Both the position numbers and the translations under genes were made by a program. The notes under the pieces are model-generated. The model saw nothing but the letters and a program-made list of their open reading frames with translations. It made no database searches and had not been told where the DNA came from. Positions 13,927 through 58,788 of a stretch of 64,000 nucleotides of DNA are shown in pieces. The stretch spans positions 21,080,001 to 21,144,000 of the forward strand of contig CM119381.1 of the NCBI GenBank assembly GCA_051294905.1. The letters run 5' to 3'. Numbering within the stretch: the stretch's first letter is position 1; every line of letters starts with the position of its first letter. Source of the stretch: Botryllus schlosseri. Taxonomy: Eukaryota.

Positions 13927-14205
13927 GTAATTGCAATCAAATCAAATGACCCTTTTTTTATCGAAACTGGTCGATCTGGTGACTGCGATTATGATGTCCT
14001 CGTTTTCGACAACACAAAGGTTAGAATTTGTAGTTGTTTCAATTTCTGTATTGGTCAGTCAACATGCATATACATATATTAAAGGTATTCTGCGGATCAG
14101 AAGTGTTTCCAAGCTTTCGAACGTACAGCAGTCAGCTGCAAGTCAACTTTACCACTGATGTATCGCACAATTTTTGGGGATTTTCTTTCACCTGGACGGC
14201 TATTA
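13927..14205 (+). CDS. Gene A, CUB1 middle and C-terminal exons
   Basis: [31 protein letters not shown] / [40 protein letters not shown]; 65-nt intron; CUB motifs CxYD, FCG, FxxD, GF. Confidence 0.9.
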
Positions 14206-17200
14206 GTACGAGGCAATTACAGTATACTTTGGACTGCAGACGTTTAGGATGCATAATTAATACGTATATTCATCGAATATGTTGTGAACCAAGATATACG
14301 CTAATGCAGGGCGGATCGACAAATTATCTGGTCCTTATCCGATCCTGTTTTGTAAAGCTCTGGTCCGACTCCAGTGGGACTCCTAGGCCGGATTCTCGAA
14401 ATGACCATGATCCGGTCCGAAAAAACTCCTGTGACAGGATAGTATTGAATGTTGATTGAAACAATGCAAATAGGAAATTAAAAACTCAAGCCTAAGCCTT
14501 ATCTGAAGTAATTATGTCAACTTTGACTTAGCATAAGGTTTATTTCCATAAACGGTTTCACTTAAACTATTGATTCGAGTATAGAAGAGGGCAAGGCTGT
14601 CCTCTTCTTAGTGAAAAGTACTGATCTAGCTGCGATCCGACTCCGGCCGTATCAGAAAAAGTACTGATCCGGCTCCGAACCGGCTCAGGCCTAAAATGAG
14701 AAAATCCGGCTCCGGTCCATGCCAGCTCTACTATACGCCACTGCCACACCACTTCACAATTATGAAGGAACGCTCAATTTCAATTCTTGAATGGATAGAA
14801 TTTAAGTGAAATTTTGCTGGTCCGCCAGGGTGTTTGAGTGATGGACTTCGCCAAATCGTTTCGACTTTTTTAAAATTTCTTTTCATTTTATACAAGTTCA
14901 TGCGATATTTTGAATCGATACATTTTCTCATAATATTAATAATTGTGGAACTCGGAAAAAGGCTGAGAACTAATAACTTGACGCCGAAACGCCAGCGGAA
15001 TGTTTTGTCATGATGACATCACAAATACGTATTGTAACATGTAAATGTGATTTCATGGCGGTTACATGAGTCCCTTTCAACCTGCGTGTCGTGCGAGAGG
15101 TGCATCAAGAGTGACCTTTGGTACTGAGTGGTGTCAACATGCTTACGCACAGAGGTGTTCAGTAACGAAGTACTTCTACTTTTTTAAAGTACACAAGTAG
15201 TTTTCTTGTACTATTACTTCTACTTCGTAATATTTCAAGATTTACTTACTCACTATTCTATATTTACAGTTTCTCAAGTAGAAGTATTATTTACTTCCAA
15301 TTAGAGAGAGAGAGAGAGAGAGAGAGAGAGAGAAAGAGAAAGAGAAAGAGAGAGCGACTTAGGAGAAGAAATTTAGGGGCTTTAGGTTTTCACAGTATAT
15401 ACACTATACAGTATATAGAAAGAATTTTTACAAGTCGAGTAAAGTTCAAAATTTTCGTCGTGTTTCGCGAAATAGATATGGAGTGAAAATTGAGTATTCA
15501 CAAAAGTATCGGTCAATATAATTGATCTAGCCATTCTAGCAGATTGCGTGATTCCTTTCATACAGTACTATAGGTTGAAGCCCATAAGGCATGCTTCATT
15601 ACAGTTTTCGCCTAGCAAAACGGTTGTAACAATACGTATAGTAGGGGAGATGTGGTACCGATGGATCACTGGGACCGAAAATACTTGAAAAATTTTCCAT
15701 GATAATTCCGTGATTACACTCCGTGAATTTGTTTACAATTACAAGCTGACAGAATCTTTCCTCACGTGCAAAAAAATTCGACCTGCGTAATTTATGGGGT
15801 CTGTGACGAATGATTTACGTTTTAGGGGGTGTAAAGTCAATTTGTATCGACATTTGCATATTTCTATATCACCTTTCAGACTAACAAACCCGCCATAATT
15901 TTTGATGTAGAGTATAGGGCTTGTATCAGGGTATATAATGGCGCATATTTTTTGAAACCATACCATCCTCGAGTGGACTATTTTCAAGTCAATTACAATA
16001 TTTATGGGGTGGGGGACCTATGGTACCATAGCCAAATCAAGCAAAATAGATCGACCAACTAATCACTTAACAACAGAAACTCGCCTGCATATATATATAG
16101 GCTATAAATCATCGTTGCCTGTGGGGTTTTATTGCTATTACGAGGTATTTGAAAGTCAAAATGTCGATTTGCGGGTAATATGTATGTGACATTAATTTTG
16201 TAAGTTTAGGCGTAAATCGAAACATGATTTTAGGCCAACATTTGAGTTGATATAATCTATTTTATTCTTGAAGGTCGCGACAAAACATTCTTCATTGGCT
16301 TGCTGTAGCTTATAGCTTATAGTACACAATTTGAGTTTTTGAGCGTATGTCTCATAGGTCCCATGCTCGTGTGCCTTTGGACCCACTGGGTGGGGACCGA
16401 TGACACGTTCGAGCAACAAATTTTAAACGTTCATAAATATTTTTAGAAAAGGCGGATATTCATGTAAATGTCCGCGATAGGTAGAGCTTGTATCGAAGTG
16501 TTGAGACAGGAAAAGATCTGCTATTCTCGGCTGAAGATTTGAGGGCCAGATATTATTTTGCAATTTTTGATCCATCGGTACCACATCTCCCCTATTCCAG
16601 CAACTTCTCCGTATCGCTCTTCGACTTGACTGCGGTCCTTAAAATGAAAGGTCGCTATTCCATGACATTTTTCAAAACGGAACGCTGTTCTGTTCCATAG
16701 CAAAACTATTGTTTTCATCCTATAATGAGGTCGAATGTTTTTGCTGCGGAAGACCTATATCGCTGGGACGTAGTAGCACGAACCCATCTCTCTGCATCCT
16801 CCGCATAGTTCAGTTTGCAGCATTTGACAGACCGCGCGAGAACGTATTCATTACTGCTTGTCACGACAGTACTTAATTATTTGAGTAGATTTATTGCCAG
16901 CCCATTCTACTTCCACTTGAACCAGTTTCAGATTGATATTAAAAGGACTACTTCTACTCGTACTTACATAGATTTTTGCATAGCTACTTCTACTTCTACT
17001 TGAGTAACTTCATTGACTGCTTTCACCAACTCTGCGCTACGAAAAATGCTATCCATCGAAGCCATATAATCAATTTAATCGAAAATTAACGCGTATTTAA
17101 AGAACCTTATGATACTCATTGTGGTCGCGAATAAGGTACAATCCGTGAAATCAAATATATTTCATGGCATCAATCACCCGATAAATAATATGGTTATTCT

Positions 17201-57800: not shown

Positions 57801-58788
57801 TCTGGTGACGTTTCGCACGACCCATTTACGGCCAACTCCCTCCTGGACTTTTATAAAATAGCGTTTACGTGTAGTCGGTGGCATTGAGGAACGTGGGTAA
57901 ACATCAGGCGATTTGCGTCAGGGTCTCAAACGCTCTATAAACTCAACAGCGGAACATTCGATTCGACCTACCCACTCGTCACACCTTTTGGCAGCAGTGG
58001 TTCAATTTCGCAATTGCGTTAGTACCAAGGACCGGCCGACAACTGCTATAGCTCGAATATATGACAGCCTTTGTGTACTTCTTTCTTAAACTATCTATAA
58101 ATAATAGATAGGGTAACCATACGTCTTCCTTTAGGAGGATTTGTCCTATTTTTTTCAGGTTTTTGAAAATGTCCTCCTCCGACGTCTAAATGTGCTCCTT
58201 TTTGGCAATTCGTCCTCCTTTACTGCTTTTACAGATAACATAACGGATAGATTCGAGTGAAAATGGGCATAAATGACGCTAAATAGGAAATTCGTGGTTC
58301 AATCGCATGTGACTTCCTTTTTTTATTTTTTTTCAGTCAACACACGAAATGTTACGGCAAAAATAGTCAAATCGGCTGTTTTAAGTTATGATCCACCAAC
58401 TTTTCTGATTTGGTAAAAGTGTCCTGCTATCCCGATTCCAAAATATGGTAGCCCTATAATAGACTATAGACTAGAGAGACCGAATAATTGAGAATTGGCA
58501 TGTGAAAAGTATTCAAATTTCCTGCAAAATGTACCTCGCTGGAATTGTTCAGGGGGATTCTGGAGGACCAGCCATGTACCTCCGAAACGGATCATGGGAA
58601 GTCGCTGGACTGTCGTCGTTTGGAGTAGGATGCGGCGAAGTGGGAATACCGACGGTATACACGGATGTGTTCAAGATGTTGCCATACATTTCCGATGGTA
58701 TGTAATGGTGTGTATCAGTTAGACGACGCACATAACACATGACTTCCAATTCACAGTAATGAACAACTGGTATGACCCAGGTACGTAA
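39693..58788 (+). CDS. Gene B: modular CUB-CUB-CUB-LDLa-S1A serine protease, catalytic triad intact; start exon not identified
   Basis: 17 exons: 39693-39814, 44113-44202, 44261-44381, 46100-46236, 46475-46585, 46664-46796, 49724-49848, 49904-50017, 54800-54935, 55000-55110, 55170-55228, 56058-56221, 56287-56391, 56450-56604, 56673-56836, 58553-58697, 58757-58788. Together 2024 nt, in frame to TAA. Architecture is matriptase/enteropeptidase-like; orthology not established. Confidence 0.93.
40173..42172 (+). mobile_element. 2.0-kb non-autonomous hAT
   Basis: Perfect 14-bp TIR cagtggcggctcgt / acgagccgccactg; perfect TSD cttgatga (40165-40172, 42173-42180). Confidence 0.93.
42448..43694 (+). 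mobile_element. hAT (SPIN/GTF2IRD2-like) deletion derivative
   Basis: TIR caggcgtcaccaa / ttggtgacccctg; TSD gtatagtt/gtctagtt; 43058-43324 encodes FGSTCRCESAFSDMNFIKNKHRTRLTDAHL, a hAT dimerisation-like C-terminus. Confidence 0.9.
44113..44381 (+). CDS. Gene B, CUB1 middle and C-terminal exons
   Basis: [30 protein letters not shown] / VFCGYRVLPSFHTKSSRLTVTFTSDESVISRGFTFTWTAI. Confidence 0.92.
44428..45433. mobile_element. hAT-type element
   Basis: caggggttctcaac / gttgagaacccctg; TSD acctagat/acctacac (6/8); partial second copy at 53694-54010. Confidence 0.7.
46100..46236 (+). CDS. Gene B, CUB2 N-terminal exon
   Basis: [45 protein letters not shown]. Confidence 0.9.
46475..46796 (+). CDS. 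Gene B, CUB2 middle and C-terminal exons
   Basis: [37 protein letters not shown] / [44 protein letters not shown]. Confidence 0.9.
47967..48259. mobile_element. 293-bp hAT MITE
   Basis: caggggtctccaac / gtttgagacccctg; TSD cgctaggg/cgctagga. Confidence 0.85.
48439..49674. mobile_element. 1.24-kb non-autonomous hAT
   Basis: caggggtcgggaacc / ggttcccgaccactg; perfect TSD gtatatgc. Confidence 0.9.
49724..50017 (+). CDS. Gene B, CUB3 N-terminal and middle exons
   Basis: [41 protein letters not shown] / [38 protein letters not shown]; absent from the ORF track. Confidence 0.92.
51928..52216 (+). mobile_element. tRNA-derived SINE
   Basis: ggcgagagagcgtagtgg (A box), gggtttgactcc (B box), body ending ggcctggtgtaaatgacaatagtggtcgac. 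Confidence 0.8.
52210..52507. mobile_element. Solo right arm of the 10782-11394 foldback family
   Basis: Matches about 11100-11394, ending gttatttttgaacagccct. Confidence 0.7.
52685..52820 (-). mobile_element. SINE 3' fragment
   Basis: ggtcatttacaccaggccgat...ctaggctttttgtaagacaccgcttacgc; a shorter piece also at about 39910-39965. Confidence 0.7.
54800..55228 (+). CDS. Gene B, CUB3 C-terminal exon, LDLa exon and linker exon
   Basis: YLHDLCGRVRPRDFLSTSNSITIRFVSRCVLPPFEQGFSIDWTTE / [37 protein letters not shown] / [19 protein letters not shown]. Confidence 0.92.
56058..56836 (+). CDS. Gene B, protease-domain exons 1-4
   Basis: DTR|[15 protein letters not shown]...LTAAHC; FGDHNI; YDIAVLHL; VKPICLP; VTGWG; VLCAGLPRATANACS. 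Confidence 0.95.
57539..57804. mobile_element. 266-bp hAT MITE (agtagaagta family)
   Basis: Perfect 12-bp TIR cagaggtggtca / tgaccacctctg; perfect TSD gtgacgtt. Confidence 0.9.
58109..58456. mobile_element. 348-bp MITE
   Basis: tagggtaaccata / tatggtagcccta; flanking direct taataga (7 bp, or 8 with a shifted boundary). Confidence 0.8.
58553..58788 (+). CDS. Gene B, protease exon 5 (GDSGGP) and terminal exon
   Basis: [48 protein letters not shown] / VMNNWYDPGT*; Ser195 TCT at 58559-58561; 59-nt intron. Confidence 0.93.

Follow-up and report, generated by a model that had tools for sequence, protein, structure and literature searches.

The 64,000-nucleotide stretch of Botryllus schlosseri DNA analysed here (C11:21080001-21144000, within a 495-Mb assembly; hereafter the window, to which all positions given without a prefix refer) carries two neighbouring protease units on the + strand, which we call A and B. 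Each combines CUB domains, an LDLa domain and a trypsin-like serine protease domain of the S1A family; the catalytic triad His57-Asp102-Ser195 is complete in B and broken in A, which has arginine at position 195. Both units were modelled by hand from open reading frames and splice sites, and DNA beyond the window (the 40 kb before it and the 220 kb after it) was also examined. GDSGGP and GDRGGP are each present at a single place in the window, at 58553 (in B) and 36548 (in A), against a chance expectation of 0, which confirms the motifs that the original prediction, made from the window's sequence, had read in the two units.

Exon anatomy of units A and B

Unit A comprises 15 exons (13927-36700) and unit B 16 exons (39693-58705). 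The 15 homologous exons common to both have identical phases and nearly equal lengths, the intron borders read AG...GT around each exon throughout, and internal stop codons are absent. Both units follow one plan in which each CUB domain is spread over three exons, followed by an LDLa exon, a linker exon of 59 nt and five protease exons (P1 to P5). In a Pfam scan of single exons with Trypsin, CUB and Ldl_recept_a, each of the three families matched exons of both units.

The CUB1 domain of A is represented by two orphan exons, CUB1mid (13927-14019) and CUB1C (14085-14205), while its N-terminal exon is absent. CUB2 follows in three exons (18473-18609, 20842-20949 and 21033-21165), of which the first has a phase-1 acceptor at 18473, and CUB3 in three more (25218-25342, 25404-25520 and 30688-30823), with a Pfam CUB match on 25220-25342 (E-value 1.7e-6). 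The exon 25218-25342 encodes one additional cysteine (SSPCFPE). The LDLa exon (30888-30998; Ldl_recept_a, E-value 9e-7) is followed by the activation-linker exon (31059-31117), which carries the cysteine of a CGK motif, and by protease exons P1 to P4 (31772-31941, 32001-32105, 32165-32319 and 32388-32542) with the R|IVGG activation site, His57, Asp102 and Cys122; Trypsin matches P1 and P3 with E-values of 2e-14 and 1.6e-7. P5 (36548-36700) contains GDRGGP, with the arginine codon CGT at 36554-36556 in place of Ser195, and reaches 17.9 bits against Trypsin (E-value 2.8e-3, below the cut-off on its own), compared with 32.7 bits for P5 of B. The intron preceding P5 is 4 kb long in A.

Unit B opens behind a phase-1 acceptor with the CUB1 N-terminal exon (39693-39814; CUB, E-value 2e-6) and continues with the remaining CUB1 exons (44113-44202 and 44261-44381), CUB2 (46100-46236, 46475-46585 and 46664-46796), CUB3 (49724-49848, 49904-50017 and 54800-54935), the LDLa exon (55000-55110; E-value 2e-7), the linker exon (55170-55228) and P1 to P5 (56058-56221, 56287-56391, 56450-56604, 56673-56836 and 58553-58705). 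Trypsin matches P1 and P5 with E-values of 1.4e-11 and 8.5e-8, and the serine codon TCT lies at 58559-58561 within GDSGGP. Two additional cysteines of B are probably unpaired, one in CUB3 (SRCVLPP, 54800-54935) and one in the protease domain (PRSCPETG, 56450-56604).

Both units keep TAAHC with His57, YDIA with Asp102, Gly193 and Asp194, the linker CGK cysteine and KPICLP with Cys122, the activation site ...KWD[AT]R|IVGGYEAEQ and the frame G-D-x-G-G-P; residue 189 is asparagine in A and B. The expectation that A had retained its reading frames, splice sites, His57, Asp102, R|IVGG and the linker/Cys122 pair thus holds in the exon models, and by its residues A is a catalytically dead S1A domain. 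The claim that exon structure and phases are identical applies to the 15 common exons; it fails for the 5' end, where A lacks the first CUB1 exon and hence does not have a complete set of three CUB domains. Exon DNA of A and B is 72-91% identical, with 0.17 nonsynonymous substitutions per site (dN) and 0.50 synonymous ones (dS), and the introns are mostly unalignable. A and B are therefore old paralogs and not two haplotypes assembled in tandem, a possibility which the original prediction had itself named as fatal to its interpretation and which these distances exclude.

Array context and selection on unit A

The description of the locus as a tandem pair did not hold, since five further cassettes lie downstream on the same strand. 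The array has at least seven cassettes, with homologs of the last exon at (window coordinates) A, 36548; B, 58553; C, 90079; D, 178206; E, 285058; F, 378731; and G, 406284, and with more distant homologs beyond. In a nucleotide tree, A and B are separated from C, D, E, F and G with 100% bootstrap support, on long branches (0.116 for A and 0.161 for B), while C to G are mutually close. A and B head the array as its two oldest and most divergent members. Among the exons of the array, the CUB3 C-terminal and P4 exons of B show the greatest divergence (B-C identity 68-70%).

The common ancestor of A and B was reconstructed with C and D. The branch to A carries 45.5 synonymous and 79.5 nonsynonymous changes, which corresponds to a dN/dS ratio of 0.49 with a bootstrap confidence interval of 0.34-0.71 and did not reach 1 in any of 1000 bootstraps; for the branch to B the ratio is 0.33 (0.24-0.45). 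Amino-acid changes are similar in number (70 in A, 73 in B), and the three indels specific to A are all in frame. The prediction that A is catalytically dead and nevertheless maintained is thus borne out by the arginine at position 195 and the ratio on its branch. This purifying selection makes a non-catalytic role of A plausible.

How long A could have drifted without constraint can be bounded by its intact 625 codons and 58 splice-site nucleotides. In simulations of neutral drift, frame and splice sites survived jointly with a probability of 0.06 at 1% divergence and of 0.004 at 2%, the latter figure using an assumed indel rate. Synonymous divergence on the branch to A amounts to ~12-15%. 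Since drift soon breaks a frame or a splice site, neutral evolution of A is limited to ~1-2% divergence, and no more than about a tenth of the branch to A can have passed without constraint. Where B, C, D, F and G have the Ser195 codon TCT, A has CGT, a difference of two substitutions, and only 15 of 560 codons acquired two or more changes on this branch. This two-step replacement, taken together with the limited room for drift, indicates that the nucleophile was lost early relative to any recent decay and that the dead domain was under selection for most of its history.

P5 is the sole exon in which A is the outlier (A-C identity 73% vs 79% for B-C), and its changes include the wall of the S1 pocket, where SSFG has become ASLG and GCG has become GCF. 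The excess of changes in this active-site exon of A is not significant (8 of 46 codons vs 62 of 514 elsewhere). In the orphan CUB1 exons, the branch to A shows 8 nonsynonymous codon changes and 1 synonymous one. As a case of nucleophile loss in a protease cassette that nevertheless stayed under selection, the locus is dated and well resolved.

Relation to known polyproteases

The closest proteins are three predicted, uncharacterised "TMPRSS9-like" (transmembrane protease serine 9-like) proteins of Styela clava of ~1,640 amino acids, encoded by paralogs on one contig. The one of the three that was scanned (XP_039274225.2, 1,642 amino acids) contains five CUB, three LDLa and three Trypsin domains according to Pfam. 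Their first module has the order CUB-CUB-CUB-LDLa-S1A of A and B, and the identity across the whole of module 1 is 39-43% for all three. B corresponds to a complete module 1 of the Styela type and A to the same module minus one CUB1 exon. In the Styela proteins this module is followed by two others of CUB-LDLa-protease type, by a stalk rich in Ser and Thr and by a hydrophobic tail, whereas A and B consist of module 1 only. In tblastn searches with the Styela protein, modules 2 and 3 were present after C and D, in which a CUB3-LDLa-protease block is followed by more CUB-LDLa-protease modules, and no further module was found after A (36701-39692) or B (58706-67964). By sequence and domain order, A and B belong to the ascidian polyprotease family of the Styela TMPRSS9-like type, and their architecture, for which the original prediction recognised no described pair, is not new: it is module 1 of this family.

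Vertebrate polyserases (TMPRSS9/polyserase-1 and polyserase-2) carry tandem S1A domains in one polypeptide, some of them dead, and have no CUB modules. Many database matches bear these names, with identity of ~35% confined to the protease domain. Arthropod clip-domain serine protease homologs are dead S1A proteins that keep the activation site and act non-catalytically; their pro-region is a clip domain, whereas A and B have CUB and LDLa domains, and there is no sequence relation beyond the S1A fold. Pfam found no clip match in the scanned exons upstream of the protease domain of A and B, and the 19-residue linker has a single cysteine. Stand-alone proteins with CUB, LDLa and Trypsin domains of about the size of B, called "ovochymase-like" or OVCH1 by annotation only, occur in Branchiostoma (OVCH1, 639 amino acids), Patella (637) and Haliotis (751); they cover 90-100% of the Styela module-1 queries at only 29-34% identity. 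We know of no pairing of dead and live members among such invertebrate proteins.

HrOvochymase of Halocynthia roretzi is a secreted ascidian polyprotease of trypsin-like and CUB domains, one protease domain of which lacks the catalytic triad, in the order protease, two CUB, protease, three CUB, dead protease, and it contains no LDLa domain (PMC9265791). Ovochymases (OVCH1/2 and HrOvochymase) have their CUB domains after the protease and no LDLa (order taken from PMC9265791), whereas CUB and LDLa domains precede each protease in A and B. Compared by domain description only, the dead domain comes last in HrOvochymase and first here. Because dead domains beside live ones are known in ovochymase and in polyserases, the duplication of a dead and a live cassette at this locus is of an ordinary kind and not a new system. 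The sole unusual point is that the first module is the dead one. One later protease domain of the Styela proteins is without the serine motif, and module 1 has GDSGGP in all three, whereas module 1 of A is dead. The locus should be useful for the annotation of ascidian polyprotease genes, of which those in this region were absent from the database matches, and for studies of pseudo-protease evolution.

One transcription unit or two

P5 of A ends in GAT G|GTATGTAA, which provides a phase-1 donor after 36692 or, if left unspliced, a TAA at 36698-36700. P5 of B ends in the same G|GTATGTAA, again with an in-frame TAA if unspliced. Wherever the last exon is readable (six copies: A, B, C, D, F and G), the donor G|GTATGT stands at this place; it scores 8.9 in A and B, where the median of the real donors in these genes is 7.5. 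F and G have the opening CUB exon of their following module within ~200 bp of the P5 donor, so that P5 ends at an internal phase-1 junction in this family.

A conserved first coding exon, which we call the leader, is found in C, D and E (MHLP[LI]NLC...ITA, preceded by AG and ending in phase 1), in C and D ~1.8 kb ahead of CUB1. A further homolog lies upstream of A at window positions -12673..-12604, i.e. 12.7 kb before the window, with acceptor, ATG and phase-1 donor intact. For B, neither homology nor a scan for ATG, hydrophobic stretch and phase-1 end identified a leader exon in 36701-39692; candidates delivered by that scan, e.g. 38937-38997, are unsupported. The leader upstream of A can be joined in frame to CUB2 of A (18473) and to the first exon of B (39693), and the P5 donor of A can be joined in frame to the first exon of B. 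Joined to CUB1mid at 13927 the leader is out of frame and meets a TGA after seven codons. The N-terminal CUB1 exon of A was not found between -53 kb and 13926 by tblastn (including relaxed settings), blastn or an nhmmer profile, and the same profile detects the corresponding exon of B with an E-value of 7.5e-46. A 5' disablement of A, which had been named beforehand as a reason to abandon the enzyme-and-decoy idea, is indeed present in the missing exon; it is not decisive, since an in-frame bypass from the leader to CUB2 exists, and paralog E demonstrates that direct joining of a leader to a later CUB exon is possible.

We tentatively propose, while rating the chance of being right at somewhat below even, that A and B are one dead-live polyprotease unit rather than a gene pair of enzyme and decoy. 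The proposal is based on the single leader, the strong donor retained at P5 of A, the phase-matched acceptor of B and the long-term constraint on A. A and B would form, or would until recently have formed, one transcription unit, in which the sole leader exon joins A in frame, today only via CUB2, and the conserved phase-1 donor of A's P5 is spliced to the first CUB exon of B. The product would be a two-headed protein, with the dead head first and the live head second; each head has a separate R|IVGG cleavage site and a separate disulfide tether, and the dead one might serve its live neighbour as a binding or scaffold module without catalysis of its own. Such a unit would resemble HrOvochymase, with its dead third protease domain (PMC9265791), and the vertebrate polyserases. 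A more specific version, in which this is a lineage-specific two-headed protease whose first head, with arginine for the nucleophile and a reshaped S1 wall, has become a selected non-catalytic module that would capture substrates for the live second head or present them to it, appears improbable to us. If true, this version would represent a cis form of the idea of an enzyme plus its regulator, with the dead domain in a position not seen in the Styela relatives.

Several observations weigh against a joint unit. The TAA directly follows the donor in A and B, and termination there is equally possible. The leader copy upstream of A has a 15-nt in-frame deletion and a glutamate in the hydrophobic core, which make it a poor signal peptide, and it is separated from A by 26 kb of DNA rich in transposons. 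A dead first module was not seen in the three Styela relatives, and the databases searched contained no B. schlosseri protein of this size or shape; nor did they yield one of A/B size from another ascidian. Samples of two bulk RNA runs (6% and 13%) and two contig sets were mapped over 34000-39900; RNA depth in these samples was zero on P5 of A and on the first exon of B, with no joints at 36692 or 39693. Every RNA read mapped in this interval was a partial match to a repeat. At 36554 no variant was reported, with coverage there almost nil. X14 RNA reads piled up on short repeats in the last intron of A (36364-36560 at depth 30 and 35576-35772 at depth 12) with loose ends on both sides, and these pile-ups are transcribed repeat copies from elsewhere and not A. 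In a second run search, P1 to P4 of A turned up only in DNA-like sets and, with 19-28% of their sequence words, in small contig sets of guessed RNA type; we did not count the latter as expression, as a run of the same study had behaved like DNA in the read mapping.

That A and B are instead two independent genes, B being secreted as the live protease and A being expressed on its own as a pseudo-protease that regulates B or its substrates in trans as cofactor or decoy, is in our view unlikely. Such a pair would agree with a domain that is dead at Ser195 yet constrained, with the TAA directly after both P5 exons, with the leader-like exon upstream of A and its in-frame route to CUB2, and with AATAAA/ATTAAA signals 680 nt past P5 of A and 880 nt past P5 of B. 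However, B has no recognisable leader or signal-peptide exon in the 3 kb ahead of its first exon, A has lost part of CUB1, the P5 donor stays strong in both units, and RNA depth was zero on P5 of A and on the first exon of B in the two sampled runs. The original prediction of enzyme and decoy as two separate secreted products is consequently not supported, given the leader that B appears to be lacking, the missing CUB1 exon of A and an A P5 donor that is strong and fits the first exon of B.

We consider it just as unlikely that A is a decaying duplicate of no present function, with B, spliced from the upstream leader across A, as the only working product. In that case Ser195Arg, the lost CUB1 exon, the degraded leader and a 5' region filled with transposons would all be disablements. 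The N-terminal CUB1 exon is gone, the route from the leader to CUB1mid soon ends in a stop codon, the leader itself has suffered the 15-nt deletion while its join to the first exon of B is in frame, and the 8 to 1 codon changes in the orphan CUB1 exons point in the same direction. In addition, loss of members does occur in this array, as is shown by the neighbouring cassette D with its broken donor and its in-frame stop. The DNA between leader and A is occupied by a very young foldback element of 14 kb and by other repeats. Against decay stand the intact codons and splice sites of A and its dN/dS significantly below 1; in view of the drift limit of ~1-2% vs a synonymous divergence of ~12-15%, any death of A would have to be very recent, and the two-step change from serine to arginine must precede it.

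An artefact, with A and B as mis-assembled haplotypes or the missing exon as an assembly error, is very improbable: long-read assemblers can generate palindromic arms like the 99.8% ones beside A, but the divergence between A and B is 17% at nonsynonymous and 50% at synonymous sites with introns mostly unalignable, the foldback occurs as inverted pairs at many other loci, and the A-B spacer is matched by contigs of an independent DNA run with no difference.

The foldback element spans -7916..6223 (C11:21072085-21086223), with its right part at 1-6223 of the window. It is 14.1 kb long, with arms of 6.5 kb that are 99.83% identical over the 6536 bp compared and a spacer of ~1 kb, and more than 40 near-identical copies (94-100%) are arranged as inverted pairs across the genome. 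By these features it looks like a very young, active transposon with long terminal inverted repeats. A repeat of ~1 kb at 6363-7346, with an internal period of ~190 bp, is 94% identical to 40173-41160, just past the first exon of B. Its interpretation as shared 5' exons was rejected, as an inverted copy is also present upstream of paralog D. What look like remnants of C introns ahead of A probably represent dispersed repeats, and no argument here is based on them.

Cassettes with symmetric phase-1 borders have been gained, lost and perhaps concatenated in this array, as illustrated by E without two CUB domains, D broken and A without one exon. In D, the CUB2 C-terminal exon has lost its canonical donor (C11:21254005-21254015; GGTGAG changed to GCTGAC) and ends with an in-frame TAA; by sequence, module 1 of D looks broken, and the remainder of the module is open. 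In E (C11:21350357-21351310), the leader is followed 727 bp further on by the CUB3 N-terminal exon in frame, and the absence of CUB1 and CUB2, as read from this arrangement, is a natural cassette deletion at phase-1 borders. The intron preceding P1 measures 9 kb in C. The protease regions of F and G (C11:21456480-21459623 and 21484045-21487188) are very compact, with P1 to P5 contained in ~1.3 kb.

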